Of a stretch of 64,000 nt of DNA, positions 444 through 64,000 are shown piece by piece (the stretch's first letter is position 1; each line of letters opens with the position of its first letter). The stretch spans positions 34,323 through 98,322 of the forward strand of contig OZ199840.1 of the NCBI GenBank assembly GCA_964304625.1. The letters are read 5' to 3'. The position numbers and the translations under genes were made by a program. The notes under the pieces were generated by a model. That model was not told where the DNA came from and did not search any database. It saw only the letters and a program-made list of their open reading frames with translations. Source of the stretch: Kudoa neothunni (lineage: Eukaryota; Animalia; Cnidaria).

Positions 444-3400
444 ATGGTTAAGGATAAATTTTTGAATTCCCTCTTATGTATATAGGTTTTTTCTTACCAT
501 TAATGAATCTTTATTAGGCATGCAAATCGCATTCTTTTGCGTGGGTAGAGAATGCAACAGCGCCCCGCTTCAGCCTCAACGTCTACTCCCTTAGCTATTC
601 TAAATTATCAAATTGAATATGATAGTGCTACTTCCTCTAATGTAGTTAAGCATACACTTGGCGGAACAAGTTATGCTACAGGAAAATGTCGTATATTGAG
701 GTCAAACGAAGCAGAAACTATATTCAACTCAAGTACTCCAGCTGATCTTAAAGAAATTTCAGAATGCCCTGGACGTGAAACTGCCGAAACCACAAAATGC
801 ATAATCGATTGCAATAGCCAAACAAGTAAAGTACCGTATAATAAACTTTCTCCTAGAACAAAATACATGTATGTATACGTTGGTGCAGATGAGGCTGTTT
901 AAAATAGAGCAATATCCAAGAGGTGGAAAGGTGTTTGGTTTGGCCATACGTAATCTAAATAACTTTGAATTGATAAATAATTTAATCAAATTTAGCATTA
1001 TTGGTCAATCCTCAAGTATCGATCTCTATGGCTGCAGAAAAATTGAAACTCCTAACAAAAACTTGCTCCCCCAGTTGCGTGCCCAATCCATTATAAAGAC
1101 GCACAATTCAAGGGGGGTAATGCGGGGCAAACATGTGACGCAGAAAACACAGAGAATGATGTTTGAATTTGATTTATTGATTCCTCATTATGAGATGAGA
1201 TGTGTGAATTATCCCAAGTTTCTTTTATTATATGCCAAATGCATACATGAAGAAAAATATCGCTATTTATGAACCTCAGTATTACGTAACAAAAAAGGCG
1301 GGAGTTGCTAATCAAGTTGTTCTTAAATTCACTGATTTAATGTTATCATCAGAGATATGTGTTTTCAGTATTAAGGACGGTAAAACTGAAGTAGCTAACT
1401 CCGCGTATGAATCGAAATGTGGAAATACTGAGGGAAAGTGTTTACGCACCTTGTAAAAATGTTGAGCTTACTGTAACAGCAGAAAAAGAAATATATAATG
1501 TTCTAATTCAAACCAGGAAATCACGATCTTTCAAAAACATCTGTTGATTTTGATGGATTTTCTCAAAAAAAATTTCGTAATTTATTTTAGTCAATAATTA
1601 TAATTATTTTATTATAAATCTTATAGCGATATCTGAGACTGGAGATGGTTTATTATCTGTTTATACGAAACAAGGTTTAACGTTGGATGGGGGATTTTTA
1701 AATCCATCATCGGGAACTAAGTTCAATACATGCACTCTAAAACATTATCCTGCTGACAAAGTCAATCCTACATCTTCAACTACTTCATGTAACGCGGCCA
1801 CTAAAAAGGATAGTAGTAGTAGTGGTAGTGAGAGTGGTGAATGCAAAACTGGTTGCGAAAAAATTAGTAATTGAACAACTATCACCAGGGAAACCATATA
1901 TAATTGAAATTGAGTCCAGTGGCATAGCAGATTTAACTTCCTTCAAAGAACAAATACTTATAAGAACAAGTAATAATTTGAAATTAAAAATAAACAAAAC
2001 TAATAATCATTAAAAGATAATGAGGAGAACAAAAATTTCCAGAGAAAACTGCCCCTACTAAAACAGAATCAACAACTACACTAACAGCTATTGGAGGTGC
2101 AGCTGAAGGCAATATGAAAGATCAACCAAATTGTGAATACTATTTAAGTCCAACTGGGAAAAAACACATTTTACACCGCTAAATGTACTGAAACCAATCC
2201 CTGTAGAGGAAGATGTAGAGAATCAATAACTATTGTTGATCTTGAACCAAACACTTCTTACGACGTTAGGGTCATTGCTGATAAGGAGTACAAAGAACAC
2301 ATATATACAAATGTTTTAACTAGTATATATATATATATTAACTTATTCAACTCAATCTAGATCTGGCAACCTTGAGAATAACTCAAAAATACACTGAGCA
2401 AGGATTGGAATTGAATGCACAATTGTCCAAAAAAGTCCCAGAAGCCATTTGCCATTATACAATCCAAATAAAAAAAGATGATGAGTTGAAGATGTTTACG
2501 TCTGCGAAGCATCACAGACACCGGCAGCTGCACCAGAAACTCAAATACTCCACCAAGCTCACCAGCCGAATCCAATTCTAATACCGACCAACCACAAACT
2601 GGTACTAGTCAAATTCAAAGTCTAAAATCAGAAATTAATAAATTAAAAATTGCAAGAGCTGAATCTAATACTCCTACTGAAACTGAAACTGATACAGATG
2701 TCACTCCAATTACGACAGTCGATACAACTGCGAGCCCGGTCAATTCAAACACATGCTCCTCGTTTCCATTGTGCAGTTCTATTAAATTCGACGACTATGA
2801 TGCAAATGAAGAGTATAAGTGTCTATTACTGCAGTGGGAAAATCAGAGAGAAATGAAATTACTTTAGTAGCTAGTAAAAATATTTTCGATATTATTATTA
2901 TTATATTAATATTTAAAATAAATAGCCGCTCCCAAAGGGGAATCCCACAGAAAACGACAAAATAATATATGTGACCCATAACAAGGGATGGTGAATCATT
3001 TGTTATAGAAAACACCCTACCATCTAGTCTTAATGAAAAATCCAAATGTAAATGGGAATTACGTAACGCGAGTACCAAATCGATAGCAATTATTAAAAAA
3101 TGCATGAGACGAAATGACAATGGATGTAGAACGTACCCTTCATGCAAATCATTCACTATCAGTGGATTAGCAGATGGCAATAATTATCACTTGACTGTGT
3201 ACAGTTCTATCAATCCAACAATTTATGGGACAGCCACTATTGAGCAAGGTAAAGCATTGTTACTTCGAAAATAATTAAAACTGTAAATTTTAGGAGCCAA
3301 AAGCAGTTCCAGGTTTATTAATTAATATTTTTAAAATAAATAAATAAATTTTTAGTTCTAAAACCATGGTCATGTATTAATTTATTGTGTTTTTACAATT

Positions 3401-3494
3401 TAACTGGTATTGTTTTAGAATAATTGCAGTAGCCGCTATTGGAGCTATGATCATGGGTGCTATTGGTTTCGTGGTTTTCAAGAAGAAAAAATAA
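444..3494 (+). pseudogene. Cys-rich FN3-like type I membrane protein family, copy 1 (10 exons; many single-base frameshifts, either a pseudogene or sequencing error)
   Basis: ATG at 444 (MVKDKFLNSLL..). Colinear with copies 2-6 and ends ...IGAMIMGAIGFVVFKKKK* at 3494. The frame is broken repeatedly at homopolymers (e.g. TTGCTCCCCCAG ~1062-1073, GCGAAAAAATT ~1855-1865, GGGAAAAAAC ~2156-2165). Confidence 0.8.
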
Positions 3495-5498
3495 ACGCCC
3501 TTATTTACGAATTATTGCCCTAAAATCCAACGTAATAGAAATTTAGATTATTTTTCTAATGGTGTGATATTTATGAAAATTTTTTAATTTGTCGACAACT
3601 TAAAATTTATTGATACTTAATCAAATAAAAATATTTTATCTTTGATGTGTTCCAACGTTATTATAAAATTTGATTGGGATGATATGACTCGGATAAAAAT
3701 GTGGGATTGTTAATAAATTTTGAAATTTTTTTTATAATTATTTGAAATTGCTAAAACTTAATGAAATATAATAAACGAATAATATTCATTTTGTTAAACG
3801 ACTTAGTTAAATAAAATATATCTATCGAAAAATAGTTGTAAACGTTGATTAATCTCCCAAATATTTGGATGTTGTATTCGGTTACTTTTATAAATTATAC
3901 ACTAAATAACGGTACTGAATTTATGTGAAATATAAATATCTGAAAACTAGATAACAAGATATGATTAATATTTTTTTTCTGTTTATTAAAAAAATGAGCT
4001 CAACGGCTTGTGTATTGGCATCTAGGATTTTCAACACTAATCAATGCAAACTCATTTCTTGGGAACTATAATTATGGTTTTAGTACTTATTCCAGTTTTT
4101 AATGAAATCTTGGGCTATTTAAAAGCTAATGTTATGTGGAAAATATTAATAAATAAATTAATTATTGGGTTACTTAACACAGTGGGTGACCAGTTTTTCG
4201 CACTGTCGACTCGTTTGTACTTTCAACAAAAAGTAGATTTATGCTGCATTGTTTTTTTTTAAAAAGATATTACCATATTTTTTTATAATAGAATGTATCA
4301 AATTAATAAAACAAATTTTAATTTATATTTGCTATTTTACGTGCTTTTCTTAATGGCCAGTTTTTCGTACATTTTTCAATACTTGTGGAGGTTACAAAAC
4401 GAGTGGTCACCTACTGTACTAAAATTATTTTCCAAAAATCCCTTAGAATCATTTTGCATCTACGTTCAAATCTGGATATAGCGTGGTTATAAAGTTGGAC
4501 ACCGATTTTATAAATTTTTGAATCACTTAAGTTCGTAATCAATTTTACTTTATTTTGCAATAACACATACGGAGGAAAAATGTTTTCAAGTCTAATGTTC
4601 TCCGATATCGAGTTTCCCTTCATATGGCGTGACATTTTAAGTTTGGTAACTGGGTTAGCGCGAGTTCGGAATTATCAAGAAAAAGTTCAGTATTGACGAA
4701 AATGTGAAGCGATAGAATTTTTGTAAATTTATAAAAGTAATCATTTAGGGGAAAACATAAAAACTTTAAAATTTAACGTATACGGTATATTTATTTCTCT
4801 AGCATACTTGAAAATTATATCAAGATTGGCGAATTGTGATTTTCCTGGCAAAAAAAAGTTGCGTTTTGAAAATTTTAAGATTCGGATGCTAAAGTGTATA
4901 ATTTAGGCTCCAAATTAAGACATTTAGATTGATCAATTATTGCTAATGTTATTATGAAAATAGTCGCCTTAACACTGTAGAGTGTGATCTTAACAGTCTT
5001 GGTACACGTATAGGCTGACTTTGTAGATTAAATATTTTGATCACAAATTTTTCTTTTGCATTAAGAATTTTTTATATTAAATTAATATTAAAATTATATA
5101 CAATTTGAAATTTATTTTTTTTAAATAAATAAATAATTGACTATAATTTAAAGTCTTTTTAATGCGCCCGCTAAAATATGGGAAATGGAAAGTTATTTAA
5201 ATTAACCGATTCGTACATTGGTTACGCGCAAAAAAAAAGAACACGAAATACAGTATTTCAAAAACTTGGATGCAACCATGTTGTATTAAAATAGATAAAT
5301 TATAATAAACGCATATAGGTAATAGTTTACTATTTCTTCATATTTAGACATATTGGGTGGTATGACTTTGCGTGATTAGAATAATATTGTAGTTGGACTG
5401 ATGTTATTTCATTAGGTTCATTAAAGACGGCCTTCCATTTATTCCTCCATTTTTGTGGATGATTGATTTTTTGGTGAAAAATTCCACGATAAGATTAA

Positions 5499-6577
5499 TC
5501 CTTTGGACCCCCCGAATTTAATTCAGCGACTGAAAAAAATTTTGTTTGCTCATTCTGTTAAATTTTAAATAATTCTATATAAAATATCCAAAAATTGGAG
5601 AAGTCATTTTAAAAATTAAAGATACACAAAAGGTGCCAAATGGTAACATTGGGACGCGGCTTATTTCAATATGCGGGAGTGCGACTGTGCTTGTTTTTAT
5701 GTTACTTTGTTTTTAACCAAGAAGTTACTCTTCCACCATCAGAAATGAAATATTAAATTATTCGTTATATTTTTGATAGTCCAAAAAGCAGTTTCTGTTT
5801 TTATTGAGGTACAAAGAAATATTACACTTAATGCAAATATGTTCAAATAAGTGAAATATTCAAATATAATATCTTCAACTTATTCAGAAATATCAGCTGT
5901 TTCAATGCCATTGTTTATTTAATTTTTCGCGTTTATTGTCTAATTTAAGCGGTAGTCATCTTACTCCCCATCATTAGAACTGTATTCGGATACAATGCCA
6001 TCATATTGACTACACAAAATGGAATCCGATTCCAGTCCAACGTCTGATTTGTTCCCATCTGGTAACAATATGATTCTTTAAAAGTATGCTCTATTCTTTC
6101 TTCCCCACTGACCTATTCATTATCCATTCCAAAGAATATAAGCACATTTAAATCAAGGGTCGAACGTTGTCGTGTGACGACGTTCACTGTACCCGCTGGC
6201 CCAATATTGCCGTGTGGCAACATGGATTAATCTGCCCCTATAGTATTCATACCAAAACATATTTTCATGTTAGATTAATCTTTAGAATAAACTTATTTAA
6301 TACTATACTTATATATTTTTTAATTTTACTGAAACCTCAAAATTCCAAGTTCAATTACAGGATACTTTTAGCCTTTTTTTATACTTGCCGTAGAGTTAGA
6401 TATTCATCTGTATTTCCCTTGATATAAAACATAAAAAGTTTTGTAATTCATTTATATAAAATCAAATAAACATTAACTATATTATTATAATAAAGATAGA
6501 TTTAAAAATGTAATTACATGGTTAAAACACTCACAAAAGTAAAATGTTTCCATTTGGCAACATAGGGGTTTAAAGGA
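5499..6577. mobile_element. Non-autonomous piggyBac-like element
   Basis: TTAA (5495-5498) then TCCTTTGGACCCC ... GGGGTTTAAAGGA then TTAA (6578-6581). Terminal inverted repeats match 11/13. Subterminal GCCAAATGG / CCATTTGGC. Confidence 0.6.
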
Positions 6578-6619
6578 TTAAGGGATGGTTCATACGAAAG
6601 AAGAAACAAAAGTTTGTGG

Positions 6620-7470
6620 TCTTTTGAATCTAGTTTCCGTCGAATAAGGTCGGTTTTATTGAACCTTACACCGCTCGTAATTAATAGCTCACTTTGAATT
6701 ATATAATCAGTAAAATCATTAAGAAGTTTCTCTATTAAAATCTCGAAAAATTGCTGTTTTCACAATACCATTTGTCAGCTGAAACGTCTAAACTTTATCA
6801 GAGCAAACATAGGCAACCAATTACGATGTTATTAGAGCGAACACTTTTTACTTTCATGTTCAAGTGCGAACCTGAAACCGACCTTCCAAATAATGTTCGT
6901 CTCATATAAAGCGAGAAGCCAGACTCATCAATGTAAATTACAGGAAAATGGAGTGGTTTAGATTCCAGTTATTTTGGAACTTAATTAATAAATATAACAT
7001 ATACCTTTAATTAATTAAAACAATTTTTGCGTTTCGATATGCAATCCTGAGAATTCCACGCAATTGGTACAATTGAAATATTGTTGAGGGCGTAATGGAA
7101 CTGGCTCAAAGAGTTATCAATAATATGTCTAGAAACGCCGATATTATGTTCTTGTAGGTTATTGGCGATTGAATCTAATGTGATTGTGCAATCTTCATTC
7201 ACTAAGCTTTGGATATTGTGATTTGTGGACGGTTGTCAATCTTGATCTCCAGTCCCCAGCTCTTCTTAGAAATGCATTCTTCGTCGGCCGACTTCATCGT
7301 CATCCTCGAATTCTTTTAAAAAACCATGAGATCGTTGATTTGAAGACTCCAACCGTTTTTTTTTCGATTTAAACATGAGTGCAATTTTCCTTGATATCCT
7401 TCAAAATAGTTTAACTAACGCCATACACTTTCGGTAACCTATGATAGTTTGTTTCGTTGTGTCTTCTAAA
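6620..7470 (-). mobile_element. Decayed IS630/Tc1-mariner superfamily transposase
   Basis: Minus strand reads NEDCTITLDSIANNLQEHNIGVSRHIIDNSL (HTH-like), then IYIDESGFSLYMRR (first catalytic D motif). Stops and frameshifts; ends approximate. Confidence 0.6.
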
Positions 7471-10890: not shown

Positions 10891-10894
10891 TTAA

Positions 10895-13140: not shown

Positions 13141-16100
13141 ATGGTTAAGTATAAATTTTTGAATTGCCTCTTATGTATATAGTGTTTTATTACCGATAAT
13201 GAGTCTTTATTAGTCATTCAAATCGCATTTCTTTGTACGATGGAAAATGCAACGGCGCCCTCTTCTCCATCAATGTCTACTCCATTAGCTACGCTGAATT
13301 ATCAAATTGAATATGATAGTTCTACTACCTCCAATTTAGTTAAGCATACACTTGGTGGAACACATTATGCTACAGGAAAATGTCGTATATTGAAGTCAAA
13401 CGAAGCAGCAAACATGGGTGGTTCGACAACAGCAGCGGCGTATCAAGAAATATCAAGCTGCCCTGGATATATTACCGATAGTAGTAACACAAACTGTGTA
13501 ATTTCTTGTGACAGTCAGAATAACAAAGTTCCATATAATAAACTTTCACCACGGACAAAATATATATACGTATATGATAATAATGATTTCGACACTGCTA
13601 AAGCAGATTATCCTAAAGGTGGAAAAGTGTTTGGTTTGGCCACACGTAATCCAAGTATCTTTAAAGCAATAAATTATATCATAAAATTTAGCATTATTGG
13701 TCAATCCTCAAGTAACAATCTCTACCAATGCTGATAGATTGAAACTCCTAACAAAAACTTGCTCCCCAGTTGCGTGCCCAATCCATTATAAAGACGCACA
13801 ATTCAAGGGGGGTATTGCGGGGCAAACATGCGATACAGGAAGCACAGAGAATGATGTTGAATTTGACCTATTGATTCCTCATTATGAGATGAGATGTGTG
13901 AATTATCCAAGTTTCTTTTATTATATGCCAAATGCATACATGAAGAAAAATATGGCTATTTATGAACCTCAGTATTACGTAACAAAAAAGGAGGGAGCTG
14001 CTAATCAAGTTATTCTTAAATTCACAGATTTAATGTTATCGTCAGAGATATGCGTTTTTCAGTATTAAGGACGGTAAAACTGGTGCAGCTAACTCCGCGT
14101 ATGAATCGAAATGTGGAAATACTGCGGGAAAGTGTTACGCACCTTGTAAAAATGTTGAGCTTACTGTAACAGCAGAAAAAGAAATATATAATGTTCTAAT
14201 TCAAACCAGGAATCACGATCTTTCAAAAACATCTGCTGATTTTGATGGATTTTCCCAAAATAAATTTCGTAATTTATTTTAGTCAATAATTATAATTATT
14301 TTATTATAAATCTTATAGCGATATATGAGACTGGTGATGGTTTGTTGTCTGCTTATACCAAAAATGGTGTATCTTTTGATGGTACATTATTAAACCCCTC
14401 TGCAAGTACAGGTACCAAGTTTTCTACGTGCACGTTAAAGCATTACCCTGCTGACAAAGTCAAACACACGCCTTCAACTACTTCATGTAACGCGGCCACT
14501 AAAAAGAATAGTAGTAGTAGCAGTAGTAGTAGTAGTAGCAGCAGCAGTAGCAGTAGCAGCAGTAGCAGTAGCAGCAGTAGCAGTAGTAGCAGTGGCAGCA
14601 GTAGCAGTAGTAGTAGTAGTAGTGAGGGTGGTGAATGCAAAACTGGTTGCGAAAAATTAGTAATTGAAGGACTATCTCCAGGGAAACCATATATTATCGA
14701 AATTGAACCTAATGGAATCGCAGATCCAGCTTCTTTCAAAGAACAAATACTTATAAGGACAAGTAATAACTAAAAATTTAATATTAACTTAACTAATAAT
14801 ATTTACAAGATAATGAGGTGAATAAAAATTTTCAAGCAACCGCCCCTACTAAAACAGAATCAACAACTACACTAACAGCTATTGGAGGCGAAGCAGAGAC
14901 AAATAAAAATAATGAGCCAAACTGTGAATACTATTTAAGTCCAACTGGGAAAAACACATTTTACACCGCTAAATGTACTGAAACCAATCCCTGCAGAGGG
15001 AGATGTAGAGAATCAATAACTATTGTTGATCTTGAACCAAACACTTCTTACGACGTTAGGGTCATTGCTGATAAGGAGTACAAAGAACACATATATACAA
15101 ATGTTTTAACTAGTATATATATATATATATATATATATTAATTTATTCAACTCAATCTAGATCTGGCAACCTTGAGAATAACTCAAAAATACACTGAACA
15201 AGGATTGGAATTGAATGCACAATTGTCCAAAAAAGTCCCAGAAGCCATTTGCCATTATACAATCCAAATAAAAACAGATGAAAGGTTTGAAGATGTTTAC
15301 GTCTGCGAAGCATCACAGACACCAGCAGCTGCGCCAGAAACTCAAAATACTCCACCAAGCTCACCAGTCGACTCCAATTCTAATCCCGAGCAAGAACAAA
15401 CTGGTACTAGTCAAATTCAAAGTCTAAAATCAGAAGTTAATGGATTAAAAATTGCAAGAGCTGAATCTAATACCCCTACTGAAACTGATACAAATGTTGC
15501 CCCAGCTACAACAGTCGATACAACTGCGAGCCCGGCCAATACAAATACATGCTCCTCATTTCCATTGTGCAGTTCTATTAAATTCGACGACTATGATGCA
15601 AATGAAGAGTATAAAGTGTCTATTACTGCAGTGGGAAAATCAGAGCGAAATGAAATTACTTTAGTAGCTAGTAAAAATATTTTCAATATTATTATTATAT
15701 TTAAAATAAATAGCTGCTCCAAAGGGGAATCCAACAGAAAACGACAAAATAATATATGTGACCATAACAAGGGATGGTGAATCATTTGTTATAGAAAACA
15801 CCCTACCATCTAGTCTCAATGAAAAATCCAAATGTAAGTGGGAATTACGTAACGCGAGTACCAAATCGATAGCAATTATTAAAAAATGCATGAGACGAAA
15901 TGACAATGGATGTAGAACGTACCCTTCATGCAAATCATTCACTATCAGTGGATTAGCAGATGGCAACAATTATCACTTGACTGTGTACAGTTCCACCGAT
16001 AAAACAGTTTATGGGACGGCTACGATTGAGCAAGGTAAAGCATTATTACTTCGAAAATAATTTAAATTGTAACTTTTAGGAGCCAAAAGCAGTTCAAGGT

Positions 16101-16281
16101 TTATTAATTAATATTTTTAACATAAATAAATTTTACATTTAGTTCTAAAACCATGGTCATGTATTAATTTATTGTGTTTTTACAATTTAACTGGTATTGT
16201 TTTAGAATAATTGCAGTAGCCGCTATTGGAGCTATGATCATGGGTGCTATTGGTTTCGTGGTTTTCAAGAAGAAAAAATAA
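13141..16281 (+). CDS. Cys-rich FN3-like type I membrane protein family, copy 2 (one apparent frameshift; poly-Ser expansion)
   Basis: GT-AG introns at 13175-13213, 13646-13691, 14269-14318, 14763-14809, 15113-15160, 15671-15713, 16035-16079, 16099-16142 and 16161-16205. Spliced product has a signal peptide MVKYKFLNCLLFIQIAFLCTMENA, tyrosine-corner motifs (LSPRTKY, LSPGKPY, LEPNTSY, YDANEEY, LADGNNY), TM VIIIAVAAIGAMIMGAIGFVVF and KKKK*. An extra T in the run at 14055-14059 shifts the frame. Confidence 0.85.
14510..14623 (+). repeat. (AGY)n coding microsatellite, about 38 codons of poly-Ser
   Basis: AGT/AGC repeats with a single GGC, in frame within exon 4 of copy 2. Confidence 0.95.
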
Positions 16282-32201: not shown

Positions 32202-35200
32202 TTAATTTTTCTTCTTGAAAACCATGAAACCAATAGCACCCATGATCATAGCACCAATAGCTGCCACTGCAATTATTCTAAAATAATATTAGTTAAATTG
32301 TAGGAACATAATAAAGTAATACATGACCATGGTTTTAGAACTAAATAAAAAATTTAATTATTTTAAAAATATTAATTAATAAACCTTGAACTGCTTTTGG
32401 CTCCTAAAAGTTACAATTTAAATTATTTTCGAAGTAATAATGCTTTACCTTGCTCAATCGTAGCCGTCCCATAAACTGTTTTATCGGTGGAACTGTACAC
32501 AGTCAAGTGATAATTGTTGCCATCTGCTAATCCACTGATAGTGAATGATTTGCATGAAGGGTACGTTCTACATCCATTGTCATTTCGTCTCATGCATTTT
32601 TTAATAATTGCAATCGATTTGGTACTCGCATTACGTAATTCCCACTTACATTTGGATTTTTCATTAAGACTAGATGGTAGGGTGTTTTCTATAACAAATG
32701 ATTCACCGTCCCTTGTTATGGTCACATATATTATTTTGTCGTTTTCTGTGGGATTCCCCTTTGGAGCGGCTATTTATTTTAAATATTAATATGATGATAA
32801 TATCGAAAATATTTTTACTAGCTACTAAAGTAATTTCATTTCGCTCTGATTTTCCCACTGCAGTAATAGACACTTTATACTCTTCATTTGCATCATAGTC
32901 GTTGAATTTAATAGAACTGCACAATGGAAATGAGGAGCATGTGTTTGAATTGGCCGGGCTCGCAGTTGTATCGACTGTCGTAGTTGGAGTGACATCTGTA
33001 TCAGTTTCAGTTTCAGTAGGGGTATTAGATTCAGCTCTTGCAATTTTTAATTCATTAATTTCTGATTTTAGACTTTGAATTTGACTAGTACCAGTTTGTG
33101 GTTGGTCGGTATTAGAATTGGATTCGGCTGGTGAGCTTGGTGGAGTATTTTGAGTTTCTGGTGCAGCTGCCGGTGTCTGTGATGCTTCGCAGACGTAAAC
33201 ATCTTCAAACTCATCATCTTTTTTTATTTGGATTGTATAATGGCAAATGGCTTCTGGGACTTTTTTGGACAATTGTGCATTTAATTCCAATCCTTGTTCA
33301 GTGTATTTTTGAGTTATTCTCAAGGTTGCCAGATCTAGATTGAGTTGAATAAGTTAATATTTTGATATATATACTCGTCGTAACATTTTCATATATGTGT
33401 TCCTTGTAATCCTTATCAGCAATGGCCTTAACGTCGTAAGAAGTGTTTGGTTCGAGATCAACAATAGTTATTGGTTCTCTACATCTTCCTCTACAGGGAT
33501 TGGTTTCAGTACATTTAGCGGTGTAAAATGTATTTTTCCCAGTTGGACTTACGTAATACTCACAGTTTGGCTCTTCATTTTTATTTGTCTTTGCGTCGCC
33601 TCCAATAGCAGTTAGTGTAGTGGTTGATTCTGTTTTAGTAGGGGCGGTTACTTGAAAATTTTTATTATCCTCATTATCTTGTAAATATTATTAGTTAAGT
33701 TAATATTAAATTTTTCGTTATTACTTGTTCTTATAAGTATTTGTTCTTTGAAGGAAGTTGGATCTGCTATGCCACTGGATTCAATTTCGATGATGTACGG
33801 TTTTCCCGGAGCTAGCCTTTGAATTACTAATTTTTCGCAATCAGTTTTGCAATCATTAGTACTACCACCACTCTTTTTAGTGGCCGCGTCACACGTAGTG
33901 GTTGATGCAGTGTGTTTAATTTTGTCAGCAGAGTAATGCTTGAGCGTACAACTAGTGAATTTAGGTTCTGATGATGGATTTAAAAATCTCCCATCAAACG
34001 TTAAACCTTGTTTCGTATAAACAGATAATAATCCAACTCCAGTCTCAGATATTGCTAAAAAATTTATAAATTAACATCGAATTAAATAAATTACGAAATT
34101 TTTTTTGAGAAAATCCATCTAAATCACTAAGAGAAGTTTTTGAAAGATCGTGATTTCTGGTTTGAATTAGAACATTATATATCTCTTTTTCTGCTGTTAC
34201 AGTAAGCTCAACGTCTTTGCATGGTGCGTAACACTTTCCTGCAGTATTTCCACACTTTGATTCAAACGTATCAACCGATGCCGCACTTTTACCGCCTTTA
34301 ATATTGAAAACGCAGATTTCAGACGACAATGTCAAATCTGTAAATTTAAGAACAACTTGATTAGGAGCTCCTGTCTTTTTAATCACATAATACTGAGGCT
34401 CGTAAATGGCCATGTTATCCTTCATATATGCATTTGGCATATTATAGAAGAAGCTTGGATAATTCAGACACCTTACTTCATAATGTGGGATCAATAAATC
34501 AAATTCAACATCATTCTCTGTGTTGTCCGCGTCACATGTTCCTCCAGCGGTACCCGCGTTGAATTGTGCGTCTTTATAGTGAATTGAGCAACCAACTGGA
34601 GGGCAAGTTTTAGTTAAGAGTTTTAGTTTTTTGCTCCCATCAACAGATATTGTTGCTTGGGGATTTATCAGCAATGCTAAATTTAATGATGATTTACCGA
34701 TTAAAAATTATTTCAATTACGTATGGCCAAACCAAATACTTTCCCACCTTTGGGATAAGTCTCAGCTTTGGCAGCATTCGTATCAGTACTATCGAATACA
34801 TATATGTATTTTGTTCGTGGGGTGAGTTTATTATATGTTTCTTTACTAGCTTGACTATTGCAATCTATCACACATTTGGTGTTACTATTAGTACTATCGT
34901 ACCCGGGACAGTTTTCGATTTCTACTAAGCCAGCTGCTGATGTTGAACCGAAACTGTTTGCGGATGCATTGGATATCAATATACGACACTTTTTTCCAAC
35001 GCCATAACTTGATCCGTCAAGTATATGTTTTACTTTATTTGATTTAGTAGCATCCTCGTATTCGATTTGGTATTTGAGTGTTGCTGTGGAAGTAGACGCA
35101 GCTGGAGTTCCCGATACTGTTGCATTTTTAATCATACAAAAGAATGCGATTTGAATGACTAATAAAAATTCATGATTGATAATAAGAAAATAAATACATA

Positions 35201-35231
35201 AGAGGCAATGCAAAAATTTATCCATAGTCAT
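32202..35231 (-). CDS. Cys-rich FN3-like type I membrane protein family, copy 3 (apparently intact)
   Basis: Same 10-exon structure as copy 2, and the exons I checked read through without frameshift. Signal peptide MTMDKFLHCLLFIQIAFFCMIKNA; ends FMVFKKKN*. Confidence 0.9.
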
Positions 35232-35573
35232 ACTAAAAGGTAAAATAAAACAACAAATAGTACTGAATAAATGAATACTATAATTAGCCGATACATGTAT
35301 CGAATAAAAAACCTATTGAAACGACGATATACTTAAAGTCTTAATTCTTATTTACTATTAAATTAATAATTATGAATTTAATATAGTTATTAAAATGCTG
35401 AAAATTGCAAATTGAAACAATTATTTTATTATATAGCTCAAACAAATTCTATAATACTTATTATCTCTTGTTCAATCCGCCATAATAAAGGCAAGGAAAA
35501 AAATTAATGGGTGGAACCAACTCTTACTGGATTAAATAATGAGTTAAATAATGTTAAACTTCATAAACGATAT

Positions 35574-42042: not shown

Positions 42043-45000
42043 TTAATGTTTCTTCTTGAAAACCACGAAACCAATAGCACCCATAATCAAAGCTCCAATA
42101 GCCGCTACAACGATTACTCTAAAATGATGTCAGTTAAATTGTAGGAAAATAATAAAGTAATACATGACCATGGTTTTAGAACTAAATAAAAAATTTATTT
42201 ATTTATTTATTTTAAAAATATTAATTAATAAACCTTGAACTACTTTTGGCTCCTAAAAGTTACAATTTAAATTATTTTCGAAGTAATAATGCTTTACCTT
42301 GCTCAATCGTAGCCGTCCCATAAACTGTTTTATCGGTGGAACTATACACAGTCAAATGATAATTGTTTCCATCTGCTAATCCACTGATAGTGAATGATTT
42401 GCATGGGGGGAACCTTTTACATCCTTTGTCTCTTGGACTCATGCATTTTTTAATAATTGCTATCGATTTGGTACTCGCGTTACGTAATTCCCATTTACAT
42501 TTGGATTTATCATTAAGACTCGACGGAAGCGTGTTTTCTATAACAAATGATTCACCATCCCTTGTTATTGTTACATATATTATTTTGTCGTTTTCTGTGG
42601 GATTCCCCTTTGGAGCAGCTATTTATTTTAAATATAATAATAATATTGAAAATATTTTTACTAGCTACTAAAGTAATTTCATTTCGCTCTGATTTTCCCA
42701 CTGCAGTAATAGACACTTTATACTCTTCATTTGCATCATAGTCGTTGAATTTAATAGAACTGCACAATGGAAATGAGGAGCATGTGTTTGTATTGGTCGG
42801 GCTCACAGTTGTATCGACTGTCGTAGTTGGAGTGACATCTGTATCAGTTTCAGTTTCAGTAGGGGTATTAGATTCAGCTCTTGCAATTTTTAATTCATTA
42901 ATTTCTGATTTTAGACTTTGAATTTGACTAGTACCAGTTTGTTCTTGGTCGGTATTAGAACTGGATTCGGCTGGTGAGCTTGGTGGAGTATTTTGAGTTT
43001 CTGGTGCAGCTGCCGGTGTCTGTGATGCTTCGCAGACGTAAACATCTTCAAACCTTTCATCTATTTTTATTTGGATTGTATAATGGCAAATGGCTTCTGG
43101 GACTTTTTTGGACAATTGTGCATTTAATTCCAATCCTTGCTCAGTGTATTTTTGAGTTATTCTCAAGGTCGCCAGATCTAGATTGAGTTGAATAAGTTAA
43201 TATTTTGATATACATATATACTAGTTGTAACATTTTCATATATGTGTTCCTTGTAATCCTTATCAGCAATGACCTTAACGTCGTAAGAAGTATTTGGTTC
43301 AAGATCAACAATAGTTATTGATTCTCTACATCTTCCTCTACAGGGGTTAGTTTCAGTACATTTAGCGGTGTAAAATATATTTTTTCCAGTTGGACTTATG
43401 TAATACTCACAGTTTGGCTCATTTTTCGGATCGCTTTCGTTGTTACCTCCAATGGCTGTTAGTATAGTTGTTGATTCTGTTTTAGTAGGGGCGGTTGCTT
43501 GAAAATTTTTATTCACCTCATTATCTTGTAAATATTATTAGTTAAGTTAATATTAAATTTTTTGTTATTACTTGTTCTTATAAGTATTTTTTCTTTGAAG
43601 GAAGCTGGATCTGGTATGTCAGATTCAATTTCAATTATATATGGTTTCCCTGGTGATAGTTGTTCAATTACTAATTTTTCGCAACCAGTTTTGCATTCGG
43701 CGCTGCTGCCACTATCAGCCTTTTTAGTGGCCGCGTCACACGTAGTGGTTGATGCAGTGTGTTTAATTTTGTCAGCAGGATAATGTTTGAGTGTACAAGT
43801 AGAAAATTTGGTCCCAGAACCTTGTTTTAACAGTGTTCCGTCAAAAGATACACCTTGCTTGGTATAATCTGACAATAATACGTTTTCAGTCTCGGATATT
43901 GCTAAATAATTTATAAATTAACACCGAATTAAATAAATTACGAAATTTATTTTGAGAAAACCCATCTAATTCACTAATAGAAATTTTTGAAAGATCGTGA
44001 TTTCTGGTTTGAATTAGAACATTATATATTTCTTTTTCTGCAGTTAGAGTAAGCTCAACGTCTTTGCATGGTGCGTAACACTTTCCTGCAGTATTTCCAC
44101 ACTTTGATTCAAAGGCATCACCCGATGCTGCACTTTTAGCGTCCTTAATGCCAAAAACACAGATCTCAGACGATAACGTTAAATCTGTAAATTTAAGAAC
44201 AACTTGATTAGGAGCTCCTGTCTTTTTAGTCACATAATACTGAGGCTCGTAAATGGCCATATTATTCTTCATATATGCATTTGGCATATTATAGAAGAAG
44301 CTTGGATAATTCAGACACCTTATTTCATAATGAGGAATCAATAAGTCAAATTCAACATCATTAATTGTGTTGTCCGCGTCACATGTTGCTCCTGCGTTAC
44401 CCCCCTTGAATTGTGCATCTTTATAGTGAATAGGGCACGCAACCGGAGGGCAAGTTTTAGTTAAGAGTTTTAGTTTTTTGCTGTCATCAACAGATATTTT
44501 TGCTTGGGGATTTACCAACAACGCTAAATTTAATAATGATTTATCGAATAAAAATTATTTAAACTACGTATGGCCAAACCAAATACTTTTCCACCATTTG
44601 GATATGTCTCTGCTTTAGCAGTGGCCTCATCACCATTATCAAATACATACATGTATTTTGTTCTTGGGGAAATCTTATCGTATGGAACTTTGCTATCTTG
44701 TTTATTGCAAGCAATTACGCAATAATTGTTATTATTAGTGGTAATATATCCAGGGCAGCTCGTTATTTCTTCATATACAGCTGCCCTTGTTTGGCTACCA
44801 TCGTTTGCGGATGCGTTGGATATCAGTATACGACACTTTTTTCCATCGCCATAACTTGATCCGTCAAGTATATGTTTCACTTTATTAGATTTGCTCTCAT
44901 CATCGTACTCAATTTGGTATTTGAGTGTAGCTGTGGGAGTAGATGTAGCTGTAGATTTAGGCACTGTTGCATTTTTAATCATACAAAAGAATGCGATTTG

Positions 45001-45078
45001 CATGACTAATAAAAATTCATGATTGATAATAAAAAAATAGATACATAAGAGGCAAAGCAAAAATTTATCTTTAACCAT
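42043..45078 (-). CDS. Cys-rich FN3-like type I membrane protein family, copy 4 (apparently intact)
   Basis: ORF pieces 44530-45078, 43886-44521, 43513-43875, 43178-43516 and 42552-43166 join via the conserved introns. Ends GFVVFKKKH*. Confidence 0.9.
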
Positions 45079-48725: not shown

Positions 48726-48972
48726 ATTTCTTAGATTGATTGTAATTTTTAGGACGAATTTTAGGATTTTGATATTTTATACCTTAGTGGTATTATAACC
48801 ATGTGGGGAAGAGAAATATTAATAAAAGACTAAAAATTTAATTATACTATATTATTAAAAAACAATAATAGTTATTTTAAAATAAAAAGGTTTTGAAAAT
48901 ATAACACTATTAGCTGTATAATCTAAATTTCTATGGTTAGATTTTAGGGTAATAATTCGTAAATATGAGCGT

Positions 48973-51900
48973 TTATTTTTTCTTCCTGAAAACCACGAAA
49001 CCAATAGCACCCATGATCATAGCTCCAATAGCGGCTACTGCAATGATTCTAAAACAATATCAGTTAAATTATAAAAACACAATAAATTAATACATGACCA
49101 TGGTTTTAGAACTAAATGTAAAATTTATTTATGTTAAAAATATTAATTAATAAACCTTGAACTGCTTTTTGCTCCTAAAAGTTACAATTTAAATTATTTT
49201 CGAAGTAACAATGTTTTACCTTGCTCAATAGTAGCGGTCCCATAAACTGTTTTATCGGTGGAACTGTACACAGTCAAATGATAATTGTTGCCATCTGCTA
49301 ATCCACTGATAGTGAATGATTTGCATGGGGGGAATCTTTTACATCCTTTATCCCTTGGACTCATGCATTTTTTAATAATTGCTATCGATTTGGTACTCGC
49401 GTTACGTAATTCCCATTTACATTTGGATTTTTCATTAAGACTAGATGGTAGGGTGTTTTCTATAACAAATGAATCACCATCCCTTGTTATTGTTACATAT
49501 ATTATTTTGTCGTTTTCTGTGGGATTCCCCTTTGGAGCAGCTATTTATTTTAAATATAATAATAATATTGAAAATATTTTTACTAGCTACTAAAGTAATT
49601 TCATTTCGCTCTGATTTTCCCACTGCAGTAATAGACACTTTATACTCTTCATTTGCATCATAGTCGTTGAATTTAATAGAACTGCACAATGGAAACGAAG
49701 AGCATGTGTTTGAATTGACCGGGCTCGCAGTTGTATCGACTGTCGTAGTTGGAGTGACATCTGTATCAGTTTCAATTTGGGTATTAGATTCAGATCTTGC
49801 AATTTTTAATCCATTAACTTCTGATTTTAGACTTTGAATTTGACTATTATCAGTTTGTCCTTGGTCGGTATTAGGACTGGATTCGGCTGGTGAGCTTGGT
49901 GGAGTATTTTGAGTTTCTGGTGCAGCTGCCGGTGCCTGTGATGCTTCGCAGACGTAAACATCTTCAAACCCGTCATCTTTTTTTATTTGGATAGTATAAT
50001 GGCAAATGGCTTCTGGGACTTTTTTGGACAATTGTGCATTCAATTCCAATCCTTGCTCAGTGTATTTTTGAGTTATTCTCAAGGTCGCCAGATCTAGATT
50101 GAGTTGAATAAGTTAATATTTTGATATACATATATACTAGTTGTAACATTTTCATATATGTGTTCCTTGTAATCCTTATCAGCAATGACCTTAACGTCGT
50201 AAGAAGTATTTGGTTCAAGATCAACAATAGTTATTGATTCTCTACATCTTCCTCTACAGGGGTTAGTTTCAGTACATTTAGCGGTGTAAAATGTATTTTT
50301 CCCAGTTGGACTTATGTAATACTCACAGTTTGGCTCATCTTTCTTATCAGTTCTTGCCGTATCTCCAATAGCTGTTAGTGTAGTTGTTGATTCTGTCTTA
50401 GTGGGCGCAGTTGCTTGGAAATTTTTATCATCCGTTTTATCTTTTAATGATTATTAGTTTTGTTGACTTTTAATTTCGAATTATTACTTGTCCATATCAA
50501 TATTTTTTCGTTTAACGAAGTTGGATTGCTGCCACCAGTTAATGCGATTTCAAGAATATAAGGTTTTCCTGCGGTTAACCCTTCAATTATTAATTTTTCG
50601 CAATCAGTTTTGCAATCATTAGTACTACCACCACTATTTTTAGTGGTCGCGTCACACATAGTGGTTGATGCAGTGTGTTTAATTTTGTCAGCAGAGTAGT
50701 GCTTGAGCGTACAAGTAGAAAATGTGGTCCCAGGCCCTTGTTTTAAAAATGTTCCGTCAAAAGATACACCTTGCTTGGTATACGCAGATAATAAACCAAC
50801 TCCAGTCTCAGTTATTGCTACAATTTTTGTAAAAGTTAATACTGACTAAAATAAAATACGAAATTTTTGTTGGAAAAATCCATTTGAATCGACTTGGTGG
50901 GTTTTGAAAGATCGTGATGTCTGGTTTGGATTAAGACGCTGTAAACATCTTTTGTTGCAGTCAGAGTAAGCTCAACATCTTTGCATGGTGCGTAACATTT
51001 TCCATCCTGATTTCCACAGTTTGATTCGAATTGTTTGCTATTTCCTGCAGATGTACCATCTTTAATACCAAAAACACAGATCTCAGATGATAAACGTTAA
51101 ATCTGTGAATTTAAGACCAACTTGATTAGGAGCTTCTGTCTTTTTAGTCACATAATACTGAGGCTCGTAAATGGCCATATTATTCTTCATATATGCATTT
51201 GGCATATTATAGAGAGAAGCTTGGATAATTCAGGACACCTATTTCATAATGAGGAATCAATAAGTCAAATTCAACATCATTAATTGTGTTGTCCGCGTCA
51301 CATGTTCCTACAGCGGTACCCGCGTTGAATTGTGCGTCTTTATAGTGAATAGGGCACGCAACTGGAGGACAAGTTTTAGTTAAGAGTTTTAGTTTTTTGC
51401 TCTCATCAACAGATATTTTTGTTTGGGATTTACCAGTAACGCTAAGTTGAATAAAATAAGCTATCAATTCAAATTTATCTAGATTACGTATGGTCAAACC
51501 AAATACTTTTCCACCTTTGGGATAAGTCGCAGCTTTGGCAGCACTCGTATCAGTACTATCGAATACATATATGGTATTTTGTTCTTGGAGAAAGTTTATC
51601 GTATGGAACTTTGCTATCTTGTTTATTGCAATCTATCACGTATTTGGTGTTACTCTCAGTATTATCGTGCCCTGGACAGTTTTCGATTTCTTCTAAGCCA
51701 GCTGCTGACGTCGAACCGAAACTGTTTGCTGCTGCATTGGATATCAATATACGACACTTTTTTCTCATCGCCATAACTTGATCCGTCAAGTATATGTTTT
51801 ACTTTATTTGAATTATTAGCATCACCGTATTCAATTTGGTATTTGAGTGTTGCTGTGGGAGTAGATGTAGCTGTAGATTTAGGCACTGTTGCATTTTTAA

Positions 51901-52000
51901 TCATACAAAAGAATGCGATTTGCATGACTAATAAAAATTCATGATTGATAATAAAAAAATAGATACATAAGAGGCAAAGCAAAAATTTATCTTTAACCAT
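48973..52000 (-). pseudogene. Cys-rich FN3-like type I membrane protein family, copy 5 (several single-base frameshifts in exons 2-3)
   Basis: Leader identical to copy 4. Frame breaks near 51760, 51572, 51215-51235 and 51093. Ends FVVFRKKK*. Confidence 0.8.
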
Positions 52001-60860: not shown

Positions 60861-60865
60861 TCTGT

Positions 60866-61688
60866 GTTTTTCTCACAAATCTACATACATATTTCTCTGT
60901 ATGGCCTACCCTTTTTAACTCATAGCTGTCTTATTGACTATTTATTTTACCCATGACCAGGATTTACAAGTATCAAAGACGAGTGCTCAAATTATCGTAA
61001 AGTCCCCTTTGATCTAAATATAATTAGTTTTGTGCTAGTACTGATAAATAATATTAAATATGATCATAATTTTGTTACGAAACTGATTCATTACATTTGT
61101 TCTACAAAATGTTACAATCAGACATGCACGGAACTTGTAAACGTAGCCAATCAACGTGTAAAAAAAGAATCAAATATATTGCTCTATACATAATATAGAT
61201 GTTTTAATTCCGGCTGTAAACAATGTGAAATATAAAAGGATTTTAAATGAATGTATACTGCATTTTTATTATAATAAATGTATATATTACTAGTAATATC
61301 AGATTTAACATAACGTTGTGGATCGGTAGGATCACTTCATATTCAATTTGTGCAGAGGTCACCTTACCATTACATAACGAACTCAATCTGATACTTGAAT
61401 CTAAGTATACGCACAATTATAGTAACATTTTCGGAAAAGCTCATGCAAATCTACAATGTATGGCCAATAAATAGATCGCGCCCTTATTTTTTGACGAAAT
61501 ATTTGGTAAAAAGTTTGCGACCAAAACGCGATTATATACAATAAATATTAAATCAGATTTTTTGATCTGAACACTTAATAATTTGAATTATTGATAAATA
61601 AAGGCGTGGTTAAAAATATCGGAGCATAAATTAAATAATCGAAATTTCACTAACTAGATAGTAGGGAAAAATTCGTAAATATGGGAGT
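60866..61688. repeat. Duplicated 3' flank shared by copies 4 and 6 (paralogue of ~39006-39357 + 41609-42042)
   Basis: Colinear similarity once the hAT insertion is removed. Confidence 0.85.
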
Positions 61689-64000
61689 TTATTTTTTCTT
61701 CTTGAAAACCACGAAACCAATAGCACCCATGATCATAGCTCCAATAGCGGCTACTGCAATTATTCTAAAACAATACCAGTTAAATTGTAAGAACACAATA
61801 AATTAATACATGACCATGGTTTTAGAACTAAATACAAAATTTATTTATTTTAAAAATATTAATTAATAAACCTTGAACTGCTTTTTTGCTCCTAAAAGTT
61901 ACAATTTAAATTATTTTCGAAGTAATAATGCTTTACTTGCTCAATCGTAGCCGTCCCATAAACTGTTTTATCGGTGGAACTGTACACAGTCAAATGATAA
62001 TTGTTGCCATCTGCTAATCCACTGATAGTGAATGATTTGCATGGGGGGAATCTTTTACATCCTTTATCCCTTGGACTCATGCATTTTTTAATAATTGCTA
62101 TCGATTTGGTACTCGCGTTACGTAATTCCCATTTACATTTGGATTTTTCATTAAGACTAGATGGTAGGGTGTTTTCTATAACAAATGAATCACCATCCCT
62201 TGTTATTGTTACATATATTATTTTGTCGTTTTCTGTGGGATTCCCCTTTGGAGCAGCTATTTATTTTAAATATTACATATAATAATAATAATATCGAAAA
62301 TATTTTTACTAGCTACTAAAGTAATTTCATTTCTCTCTGATTTTCCCACTGCAGTAATAGACACTTTATACTCTTCATTTGCATCATAGTCGTTGAATTT
62401 AATAGAGCTGCACAATGGAAACGAAGAGCATGTGTTTGAATTGACCGGGCTCGCAGTTGTATCGACTGTCGTAGTTGGAGTGACATCTGTATCAGTTTCA
62501 ATTTGGGTATTAGATTCAGATCTTGCAATTTTTAATCCATTAACTTCTGATTTTAGACTTTGAATTTTACTAGTACCAGTTTGTGGTTGGTCGGTATTAG
62601 AATTGGATTCGGCTGGTGAGCTTGGTGGAGTATTTTGAGTTTCTGGTGCAGCTGCCGGTGCCTGTGATGCTTCGCAGACGTAAACATCTTCAAACCCGTC
62701 ATCTTTTTTTATTTGGATTGTATAATGACAAATGGCTTCTGGGACTTTTTTGGACAATTGTGCATTTAATTCCAATCCTTGCTCAGTGTATTTTTGAGTT
62801 ATTCTCAAGGTCGCCAGATCTAGATTGAGTTGAATAAGTTAATATTTTGATATACATATATACTAGTTGTAACATTTTCATATATGTGTTCCTTGTAATC
62901 CTTATCAGCAATGACCTTAACGTCGTAAGAAGTATTTGGTTCAAGATCAACAATAGTTATTGATTCTCTACATCTTCCTCTACAGGGGTTAGTTTCAGTA
63001 CATTTAGCGGTGGTGAAAATGTATTTTTCCCAGTTGGACTTATATAATACTCACAGTTTGGTTCTTCATTTTTATTTGTCCTCTGGTTCGCCTCCAATAG
63101 CAGTTAGTGTAGTTCTAGATTCTGTCATAGCAGGGGCAGTTTCTTGGAAATTTTTATCTTCCGTTTTATCTATTAATGATTATTAGTTTTAATGCTTTTT
63201 AATTTCAAATTATTACTTGTCCATATCAATATTTGTTCGTTTAAGGAAGTTGGATTGCTGTTACCAGTTAATGCGACTTCAAGAATATAAGGTTTTCCTG
63301 CAGTTAATCCTTCAATTACTAATTTTTCGCAGCTAGCTTTACAATCATTATTATTAGTACTTCTGTAATTTTCGCCACATTGAGTGATAGATGGATCTTT
63401 TTTAATATTGTCAGCTGGGTAATGTTTTAAAGTGCAACCAGTAAACTGTGTGCCTGATCCTGGCTTAAAAACTGCTGCGTCAAAAGATACACCTTTATTG
63501 GTATAATCTGACAACAAACCGTTTCCAGTCTCCGATATTGCTAAAAAATTTATAAAAGTTAATATTGACTAAAATAAATTACGAAATTTATTTTGAGAAA
63601 ACCCATCTAATTCACTAATAGAAATTTTGAAAGATCGTGATTTCTGGTTTGAATTAGAACATTATATATTTCTTTTTCTGCAGTTAGAGTAAGCTCAACG
63701 TCTTTGCATGGTGCGTAACACTTTCCTGCAGTATTTCCACAGTTTGATTCGAATTGTTGGCTATTTTCTGCAGATGTACCATCTTTAATACCAAAAACAC
63801 AGATCTCAGATGATAGTGTTAAATCTGTGAATTTAAGAACAACTTGATTAGGAGCTCCTGTCTTTTTAGTCACATAATACTGAGGTTCATAAATAGCCAT
63901 ATTTTTCTTCATATATTCGTTTGGCATATGATAAAAAAAACTTGGATAATTCTGACACCTCATCTCATAATGAGGAACTAGTGTATCAAACTCCACAGTG
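61689..64000 (-). CDS. Cys-rich FN3-like type I membrane protein family, copy 6 (5' part beyond window; a few single-base indels)
   Basis: Exon 3 (partial) to exon 10 are colinear with the other copies. Ends FVVFKKKK*. Apparent indels near 63625, 62960 and at the exon-7 donor (~61937). Confidence 0.8.

Follow-up and report, generated by a model that had tools for sequence, protein, structure and literature searches.

A large, lineage-restricted family of fibronectin type III-like membrane proteins in the fish parasite Kudoa neothunni, diversified by segmental gene conversion

How myxozoans, which are economically important parasites of fish, handle the immunity of their hosts is largely unknown, and a stretch of the genome of one of them, the cnidarian Kudoa neothunni, raises the question of whether an animal could keep a repertoire of variable surface proteins of the kind known from protozoa. 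The stretch analysed here (the window) comprises 64,000 nucleotides (nt) of assembly GCA_964304625.1 (contig OZ199840.1, forward-strand positions 34,323 to 98,322). An original prediction, made from its letters without database searches, described six paralogues of an unrecognised, cysteine-rich, fibronectin type III (FN3)-like membrane protein with a variable tip and an invariant base. We found that these genes belong to an undescribed family that is very large, restricted to one lineage, under selection, type I in topology, FN3-like and diversified by gene conversion. The reading that we favor, and consider probable without being certain of it, is that of a lineage-specific FN3-like membrane-protein family, expanded by duplication and segmental conversion, whose products would serve as a diversified coat or as adhesins.

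Self-comparison of the window confirmed six homologous units of about 3 kb. Copies 1 and 2 lie on the plus strand (444..3494 and 13141..16281) and copies 3 to 6 on the minus strand (32202..35231, 42043..45078, 48973..52000 and 61689..64000); for copy 6 the window holds the 3′ two-thirds of the gene, the 5′ end lying about 1.3 kb past it. Copy 2 was read base by base and all six copies were aligned, giving a gene of nine exons rather than the ten first proposed, as the apparent intron in exon 3 is a 1-nt frameshift of copy 2, an extra T in a T-run at about 14050-14055. Each intron of all six copies is bounded by GT..AG. Both these dinucleotides and the intron phases are kept in 18 of 18 copies of a close subfamily, made up of the six window copies and the loci L003 and L024-L034 elsewhere in the genome; seven of the 18 are fully open. 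Introns measure 39-53 nt and are in phase 1, except the last, which has about 107-117 nt and is in phase 2. Within the window, copies 3 and 4 alone have fully open exons in the assembly. Both are intact nine-exon genes without frameshifts, whose exons add up to 2,619 nt (872 codons and a stop), exon 3 being a single open piece of 582 nt. Copy 3, with every exon open in phase, was the reference for all evolutionary tests; its exons 1-5 occupy 35198-35231, 34721-35158, 34095-34676, 33725-34054 and 33375-33677, and its exons 6-9 occupy 32819-33334, 32449-32769, 32385-32403 and 32202-32277, all on the minus strand. Lesions mark the remaining copies: 16 frameshifting indels in copy 1, all of 1-2 nt; the single extra T in copy 2; five 1-nt indels in exons 2-3 of copy 5, whose 3′ exons are open and which is either a pseudogene or a carrier of consensus errors; and five frameshifting indels in copy 6, two of them mutually compensating (a deletion at the exon 7 donor offset by an insertion in exon 8), with further ones in exons 3 and 5. 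The open reading frames 15758-16060 and 32423-32725, from the last module of copies 2 and 3, do give the same 100-residue translation, as had been claimed, and the four differences in their DNA each fall at a third codon position.

Such lesions and the repeats around them could suggest that the genes are an artefact, that is, assembly duplicates, haplotigs or pseudogene debris of a low-coverage, metagenome-derived assembly. Part of the window does look like this. Positions 1-37,396 match C3:2,789,422-2,826,792 by megablast, so that copies 1 and 2 recur 2.75 Mb away, and the block starts right after a 200-N scaffold gap (C3:34123-34322) that ends one base before window position 1. Over window 1-8,000 the twins differ by 7 mismatches and 48 indel positions, over 8,001-31,000 they are essentially identical, and across copy 3 the divergence climbs sharply; weaker collinearity with the 2.8-Mb array reaches about 58.5 kb of the window. 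Of the 75 one-base gaps between window and twin, 40 are in homopolymers. Copy 1 is 99.9% identical by substitutions to the intact L029 (C3:2.79 Mb), with 21 gap positions, and copy 2 shows essentially no substitutions against L030 (C3:2.80 Mb), with 17 gap positions, 15 of which are in a shorter poly-Ser repeat. As its twin is intact, the lesions of copy 1 are consensus errors, and window 1-8,000 is an error-rich contig end of the public assembly, not a case of pseudogene decay. Copies 1 and 2 do not count as paralogues separate from L029 and L030, and the 1-nt lesions of copies 2, 5 and 6 cannot be trusted from the assembly alone. For K. neothunni, a HiFi k-mer coverage of about 7, a quality value (QV) of 48.5 and residual haplotypic duplication were reported with the genome (PMC12239612). 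The 37.4-kb block is either a true duplication that exceeds the read length, and would then explain the contig break there, or a leftover haplotig. The analysis thus flags a probable redundancy, along with the error-rich end, in a public reference assembly.

The original prediction had itself named assembly duplication as a danger, and this may apply to copies 1 and 2. It does not apply to copies 3-6, which reach at most 91.6% identity with every other locus and differ from them by 8-20%. As an account of the whole family, an artefact is already refuted, and we give it next to no credence: there are hundreds of loci, from 38% to 100% identical, with conserved splice sites and open exons, the ratio of nonsynonymous to synonymous divergence (dN/dS) is below 1, and homologous fragments occur in four independent public samples. 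Two observations on single copies may be added here. A read-derived contig lacking one base at 14055 was considered as a repair of copy 2 and rejected, since contigs of the copy-1/L029 type align there too, at 95%. Exon 4 of copy 2 also holds an (AGC/AGT)n microsatellite (14496-14634) that would encode a poly-Ser run of about 45 residues, at a site where the other copies have few Ser or Gly residues.

How large is the family? The genome-wide count proposed as a check gave at least 150 loci, with 320-424 candidates. A search with the last module scored 150 of 320 candidates, from 100% down to 38% identity and on three chromosomes, and 82 of these best 150 matches are on the smallest chromosome. 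A profile of the exon-3 core, present a single time in each gene, scored 150 of 424 candidates, all at E <= 1e-71, and 148 of the 150 scored cores are free of stops. From these counts, we put the family at 150 loci or more, and probably 300-400, distributed over all three chromosomes. Several hundred members, set against 5,316 predicted proteins, may make it the largest gene family of the genome; annotation from protein hints tends to miss lineage-specific genes. The arrays are spread along the three chromosomes and not confined to chromosome ends. The window lies 34 kb from a scaffold end, behind the scaffold gap, and the first 98 kb of the contig contain no (TAAACC)n repeat. Twenty diverse members have a uniform module order. 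At L019 (C1:13258097-13262526), the last module occurs twice in tandem (gene-oriented 3477-3830 and 3892-4236), and module number can therefore vary.

When 1.84 billion representative proteins were searched exhaustively with profiles, the only matches beyond this genome were 18 unnamed fragments from four samples (SRR33849685, SRR31175926, ERZ795007 and ERZ28624939). As these few fragments were all, the family appears confined to the Kudoa lineage and its relatives and absent from annotated proteomes. The outside homologues are diverged, at about 30-60% identity (L036, L037, L043 and L058 from SRR33849685 and SRR31175926, and those of ERZ795007 and ERZ28624939), and presumably come from other myxozoans. 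One of the outside contigs retains modules 1-5 in order, and another adjoins SNF5 and ribosomal S14 genes. L036 lacks the intron that separates exons 2 and 3. We found no published description of a Kudoa FN3 or multigene family in the literature, and the text of the K. neothunni genome paper (PMC12239612) does not contain 'surface', 'gene family', 'paralog' or 'lineage-specific'.

What drives the copies apart, and what holds part of them together, was examined in the close subfamily, from which copies 1 and 2 were dropped as redundant, leaving 16 copies for the evolutionary tests. Their mean Jukes-Cantor (JC) distance is 0.33 in the 300 nt upstream of the gene, 0.22-0.43 from exon 1 to exon 4 with introns and 0.24 in intron 4; it is 0.04-0.13 from exon 5 to exon 9 with introns, and 0.30 in the 150 nt that follow the stop codon. 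A homogenised tract thus runs from exon 5 to the stop codon, introns included (32202..33677 on the minus strand in copy 3), and is present in every copy. Synonymous divergence (dS) is 0.12-0.33 inside the tract versus 0.73-0.80 in the distal exons. Because the 1.6-kb tract is sharp-edged and conserved whether coding or not, we attribute it to concerted evolution by gene conversion. The 5′-3′ gradient lies in synonymous divergence, not in selection. The invariant protein base of the original prediction is therefore replaced by a gene-converted DNA tract that takes in introns. In the deep family, per-exon identities of 41, 55, 47, 51, 41 and 54% for exons 2-7 reveal no strong gradient from tip to base. 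Within the window, the distal modules do diverge more between copies than the 3′ part: against copy 2, the 5′ halves of the other copies are 74-84% identical and the 3′ halves 90-93%. For the greater conservation of introns than of distal exons that was also proposed, the picture is mixed, with JC distances of 0.24-0.43 for distal introns versus 0.22-0.31 for distal exons, and from exon 5 to exon 9 introns and exons are equally homogenised (0.04-0.13).

Conversion also appears to have reshuffled the diverse 5′ part. A permutation test for shared tracts over the whole gene was discarded, as it was inflated by rare variants in the 3′ half, and the test was run on the 5′ part alone with 5,000 permutations. 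In 52 of 120 pairs, the shared identical tracts exceed those of all 5,000 permutations. Copy 4 is the clearest mosaic: it is identical to L033 at 103 consecutive informative sites over 253 bp of exons 1-2, and to L031 at 82 consecutive informative sites over 239 bp of exon 3, so that its exons 1-2 resemble L033 and copy 5 and its exon 3 resembles L031 and L003. The array in the window and the one at 2.8 Mb are collinear, which allows genes to be compared with their flanks. Intergenic DNA is 94.8% identical between the arrays at window 38.3-39.4 kb and 96.1% at 54.3-58.5 kb. The positional gene pairs are less alike: 89.7% for copy 3 and L031 (84% in the 5′ half), 82.0% for copy 4 and L032 (73%) and 89.1% for copy 5 and L033 (86%), a divergence 3-6 times that of the flanking DNA. 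Copy 4 is nearer to L031, L003 and L024 than to its positional partner L032. Since the genes outpace their flanks while dN/dS stays below 1, import of sequence from other paralogues is the best explanation. Such segmental mosaicism agrees with the proposed likeness to protozoan variant-antigen families.

If the variable modules were driven apart by an immune system, one would look for diversifying selection in them. We calculated dN/dS per exon with the method of Nei and Gojobori (NG86), the only one used. The values are 0.33 for exon 2 (dS 0.73), 0.18 for exon 3 (dS 0.75), 0.30 for exon 4 (dS 0.80), 0.26 for exon 5 (dS 0.33), 0.52 for exon 6 (dS 0.12), 0.21 for exon 7 (dS 0.18) and 0.18 for exon 9 (dS 0.29). 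Among 12-codon windows in exons 2-5, none exceeds 1 by this method; their maxima are 0.65-0.92, mostly in loops near or between cysteines. Distal dN/dS is therefore well below 1 (0.18-0.33), which the original prediction had set in advance as a finding that would speak against it. Purifying selection implies that the genes are functional. Windows above 1 were seen only in the Ser/Thr/Pro linker of exon 6, and we set them aside as noise or relaxed constraint, as they rest on a dS of 0-0.06.

The translated exons agree with the predicted order of signal peptide, about seven modules, transmembrane (TM) segment and four-residue tail. By inspection, the N-terminus is hydrophobic and resembles a signal peptide. 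The ectodomain has seven modules, each with four conserved cysteines, and a Ser/Thr/Pro-rich stretch in exon 6, and the C-terminus consists of a TM segment followed by KKKK, KKKN, KKKH or RKKK. The TM segment and a KKK[NKR](D) tail are conserved across the family, distant members included. The four cysteines per module are invariant and probably form two disulfides. Cysteine makes up 30 of about 872 residues (3.5%), at spacings from C-x3-C to C-x7-C, and the family protein has no CXXC motif; it is thus not cysteine-rich in the sense of the variant surface proteins (VSPs) of Giardia, as had been supposed.

All searches and structure predictions used single exons rather than a joined spliced protein. 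Single exons of copy 2 gave only weak fn3 matches in Pfam. For the exon-5 module, 15 of 28 diverse members match Pfam fn3 (PF00041) at E <= 0.01 (best 4.5e-6), most of them below the gathering score, and copy 3's own exon-5 module has no fn3 score at 0.01; of the same 28 modules, 16 match the FN3-like N domain of purple acid phosphatase and 7 a DSCAM FN3 family. Against the PDB, the exon-5 profile found titin first (1.4e-8), followed by Dscam, fibronectin, contactin and NCAM2. The AlphaFold2 model of this module is all beta, with a predicted local distance difference test score (pLDDT) of 79 and a predicted template modelling score of 0.68, and Foldseek matched it mostly to FN3 domains at TM-scores of 0.50-0.57, with weak E-values (5e-3 to 4e-2). 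The exon-3 core was modelled at pLDDT 61 and its C-terminal half alone is usable; residues 83-194 resemble FN3 domains of leptin receptor, IL-11Ra, neogenin and fibronectin at middling Z scores of 6-7. In its four-cysteine layout and strand motif, the exon-7 module agrees with the exon-5 module. A feature search of the ESM atlas with exons 2 and 3 returned nothing usable. A disulfide-stapled FN3-like chain is well supported for one module and reasonable for three or four, and for the rest we infer it. The claim of an unrecognised FN3-like type I membrane protein without a signalling tail is supported.

Taken together, these data allow a pathway from gene to repertoire to be proposed. Each gene would encode a type I membrane glycoprotein of about 870 residues. 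From the N-terminus, this would comprise a signal peptide, a rod of seven divergent, FN3-like beta sandwiches, a single TM helix and a Lys-rich tail of 4-5 residues, and the Ser/Thr/Pro-rich stretch of exon 6 could act as a mucin-like stalk. Diversity would arise by duplication and then by segmental gene conversion among paralogues. This conversion would make the membrane-distal exons mosaic and drive the gene bodies apart several-fold faster than their flanks, and it would also keep the 3′ tract (membrane-proximal modules, stalk, TM segment and introns) nearly uniform within the subfamily. At the surface of the parasite cell, the products could form a diversified set of coat proteins or adhesins that face host cells or other cells of the parasite.

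Several points weigh against this proposal. Of the FN3 assignments, only that of the exon-5 module is solid; the exon-7 module matched Pfam in 0 of 24 cases, and exon 2, the N-terminal module, together with the first half of exon 3 remains orphan sequence, modelled with low confidence (pLDDT 61). Shared ancestry is corrected for only in part by the tract test, and NG86 values of 0.7-0.8 for dS are rough in a recombining family. Haplotypes left uncollapsed at 7x HiFi coverage may account for part of the copy count. The published annotation comprises 5,316 proteins from protein hints, and very few RNA reads could be mapped (PMC12239612); three host-labelled RNA runs gave 0 reads at the locus, which is no test of absence. 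A surface location is what the topology by itself suggests. Lastly, the tails of most members match the K(X)KXX di-lysine pattern for retrieval to the endoplasmic reticulum (ER), and the proteins could thus be retained inside the cell.

In that case, the family would consist of intracellular membrane proteins, subject to di-lysine ER retrieval or lining a secretory organelle, with their variable modules facing the lumen. Tails such as KKKN, KKKK, KKKH, KKKRD, KKKKD and KKKND indeed put Lys at -3 and -4 (or -5), in distant members too. However, a few basic residues behind a TM helix are a simple stop-transfer signal as well, coatomer may have too little room to bind next to the membrane when the tail has just 4-5 residues, and the RKKK and KRKSQNSL tails of some members do not fit K(X)KXX. 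A huge, diversified luminal family would also have no obvious rationale, and we consider an intracellular role very unlikely.

The design that came to mind first was that of the Giardia VSPs. Like the Kudoa family, the VSPs of Giardia and other diplomonads form a large type I family in which a variable ectodomain precedes a conserved TM segment and a conserved basic tail of very few residues. However, they have more than 10% Cys, many CXXC motifs and a CRGKA tail, whereas the Kudoa proteins have 3.5% Cys, no CXXC, a KKK[NK] tail, an FN3-like fold and genes of nine exons, and no Kudoa exon matches the Pfam VSP family (PF03302) at E <= 1. The specific comparison with Giardia therefore fails. A broader one, with trypanosome VSG, Plasmodium var and Pneumocystis MSG genes, goes further: these too occur as hundreds of clustered paralogues with segmental mosaics, their gene bodies outpace the flanks, and a conserved 3′ or membrane-proximal part is joined to a variable distal part. 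They differ in that the Kudoa arrays are not restricted to subtelomeres, that most Kudoa copies are intact, and that the Kudoa proteins come from an animal and have an unrelated fold.

Could the Kudoa family then be a true antigenic-variation system, in which switching and mosaic conversion outpace host antibodies, as in the VSG, var, VSP and MSG systems? It is very large and arranged in arrays, mosaic tracts are widespread, the genes diverge faster than their flanks, and the most variable module is the membrane-distal one. A possible means of coordinated control is also at hand. A promoter-like block of about 190 nt precedes the genes of the subfamily (35232..35420 on the minus strand at copy 3), with a majority base in 76-96% per 10-nt bin. 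Once per gene, it holds the 14-nt palindrome CGATACATGTATCG, which lies 58-71 nt upstream of the five start codons in the window. With at most two mismatches, the palindrome occurs at 373-386, 13070-13083, 35289-35302, 45136-45149 and 52058-52071 and nowhere else in the window, that is, 5 matches versus 0.14 expected. It may be the binding site of a dimeric regulator. The conserved block was not found upstream of distant family members.

According to a preprint, antigenic variation has been observed in Sphaerospora molnari and a few other myxozoans, by a mechanism that is unknown (10.64898/2026.02.11.705288). In S. molnari, putative VSP-, RIFIN/STEVOR- and ETRAMP-like families of 10-27 genes were proposed to serve immune evasion (10.64898/2026.02.11.705288; PMC11792419), and its 'VSPs' likewise have a short basic C-terminal motif, [KR]X[KR]XK[KR] (10.64898/2026.02.11.705288). 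These are, like the Kudoa genes, lineage-specific duplicated families of membrane or secreted myxozoan proteins. By their descriptions, however, they are either Plasmodium-like or have more than 10% Cys with CXC/CXXC motifs, whereas the Kudoa family is FN3-like and about 10-fold larger. The latter is not mentioned in 10.64898/2026.02.11.705288, in PMC11792419 or in PMC12239612. The idea of antigenic variation in myxozoans is therefore current in the field, and the FN3-like family itself has not been described before.

The evidence on the other side is of several kinds. Distal dN/dS is 0.18-0.33, with no window above 1; the arrays run along all chromosomes and not just their ends; and, with 148 of 150 exon-3 cores intact, a large archive of pseudogenes is not apparent. 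Within the muscle fibres where they grow, Kudoa plasmodia have little exposure to immunity. On this balance, true antigenic variation seems distinctly unlikely. An animal running a protozoan-style system, with hundreds of FN3-like coat genes of which one or a few are expressed and with the 3′ tract and the palindrome as handles for recombination and control, is doubtful to the same degree; if expression did prove exclusive, the family would offer a rare metazoan example of antigenic variation. Of the features of the variant-antigen class, a large clustered family with mosaic exchange is present, and diversifying selection on exposed regions was not detected by NG86, the top distal 12-codon window, in loops, being 0.92. 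We classify the Kudoa family as an expanded family of parasite interface proteins shaped by gene conversion.

The interface need not be with the host. The proteins might serve the parasite's own cell-cell adhesion or recognition, during cell-within-cell development or spore formation, or in telling self from non-self among co-infecting clones. Tandem FN3 ectodomains are a standard animal design for adhesion, the top matches include NCAM, Dscam, contactin and titin, and purifying selection acts throughout. The likeness to animal FN3 surface proteins (NCAM, Dscam, contactins, receptor tyrosine phosphatases and cytokine receptors) extends to a type I, single-pass topology, a chain of beta sandwiches of about 100 residues, modules on their own phase-1 exons and the L-x-P-x-T-x-Y-x-[VI] strand motif. 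However, the Kudoa modules have four invariant cysteines where canonical FN3 has none, and most score below Pfam thresholds; the proteins lack immunoglobulin (Ig) domains and a cytoplasmic domain, and their genes exist in hundreds of copies confined to one parasite lineage. Several hundred copies are far beyond the seeming need of so simple an organism, and a signalling tail is missing.

Cnidaria do have a known polymorphic, clustered, single-pass allorecognition family (cited in PMC11792419). The Kudoa proteins would have no sequence relation to its Alr members, which are Ig-like. Hydractinia Alr genes are, like those of Kudoa, cnidarian, clustered and type I, with tandem beta sandwiches of which the membrane-distal one is most variable. 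Their Ig-like fold and, in many, their signalling tails set them apart. A role in adhesion or recognition among the parasite's own cells is unlikely, if worth keeping in view. The favored reading remains a diversified coat or adhesin repertoire, and the family is an obvious candidate for the parasite-host interface, which offers targets for antibodies, surface proteomics and expression studies. From an evolutionary perspective, it also shows cleanly, in nature, how conversion tracts with definite bounds shape a modular gene family of an animal.

The genome in which the family sits was assembled by Weber, Paulini and Blaxter (G3 2025, PMC12239612) from HiFi reads of Thunnus albacares, and was described as 40.2 Mb in 3 chromosomes with a circular mitochondrial contig, a GC content of 30.41% and a median intron of 49 bp (PMC12239612). 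The assembly that we used has 40.26 Mb in three contigs (17.15, 12.04 and 11.05 Mb) and an 18.2-kb mitochondrial contig. The latter (C4; 18,219 bp) has 43% GC versus 30% in the nuclear contigs and encodes a very divergent cox1 with 242 bits to Pfam COX1. Since this gene has AGA at conserved Arg positions (in the IR-E, DR and PRR motifs), ATA at conserved Ile and TGA for Trp, translation table 4 applies, which is used by no bilaterian. ARAGORN found no canonical tRNA in this contig, its -mt mode made 14 doubtful calls, and the first 10 kb had no Rfam match. A nuclear HSP70 is 75-78% identical to metazoan HSC70 and has no close relative. About 12 homeobox matches and 2 weak matches to the ligand-binding domain of nuclear receptors indicate animal-type genes in small number, and no nematode cuticle-collagen domain was found in this genome. 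That lack and the non-bilaterian mitochondrial code led us to reject a nematode with a Strongyloides-like karyotype as the source, and the code likewise speaks against an orthonectid or dicyemid. One sequencing run with the locus has contigs of about 830 Mb in total, so that its species label is that of a host. All these features agree with the published K. neothunni genome, and we regard the identification as almost certain.

Some features of the family loci remain to be mentioned. In L025 (C3:114800-118700), a run of N interrupts the region from exon 6 to exon 7. The last intron (16099-16205 in copy 2) is about twice the usual length and highly conserved in every copy. It contains a possible 13-nt micro-exon, whose inclusion would put the TM segment out of frame; that its use might yield a soluble isoform is purely speculative. 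The arrays had also been described as rich in transposable elements. Of this, what could be verified is a pair of piggyBac-type transposase remnants between copies 1 and 2 (8996-9265 and 9772-9969, plus strand; Pfam DDE_Tnp_1_7, E = 2.1e-6 and 1.5e-3); a further piggyBac-type remnant lies at L004:105-518.

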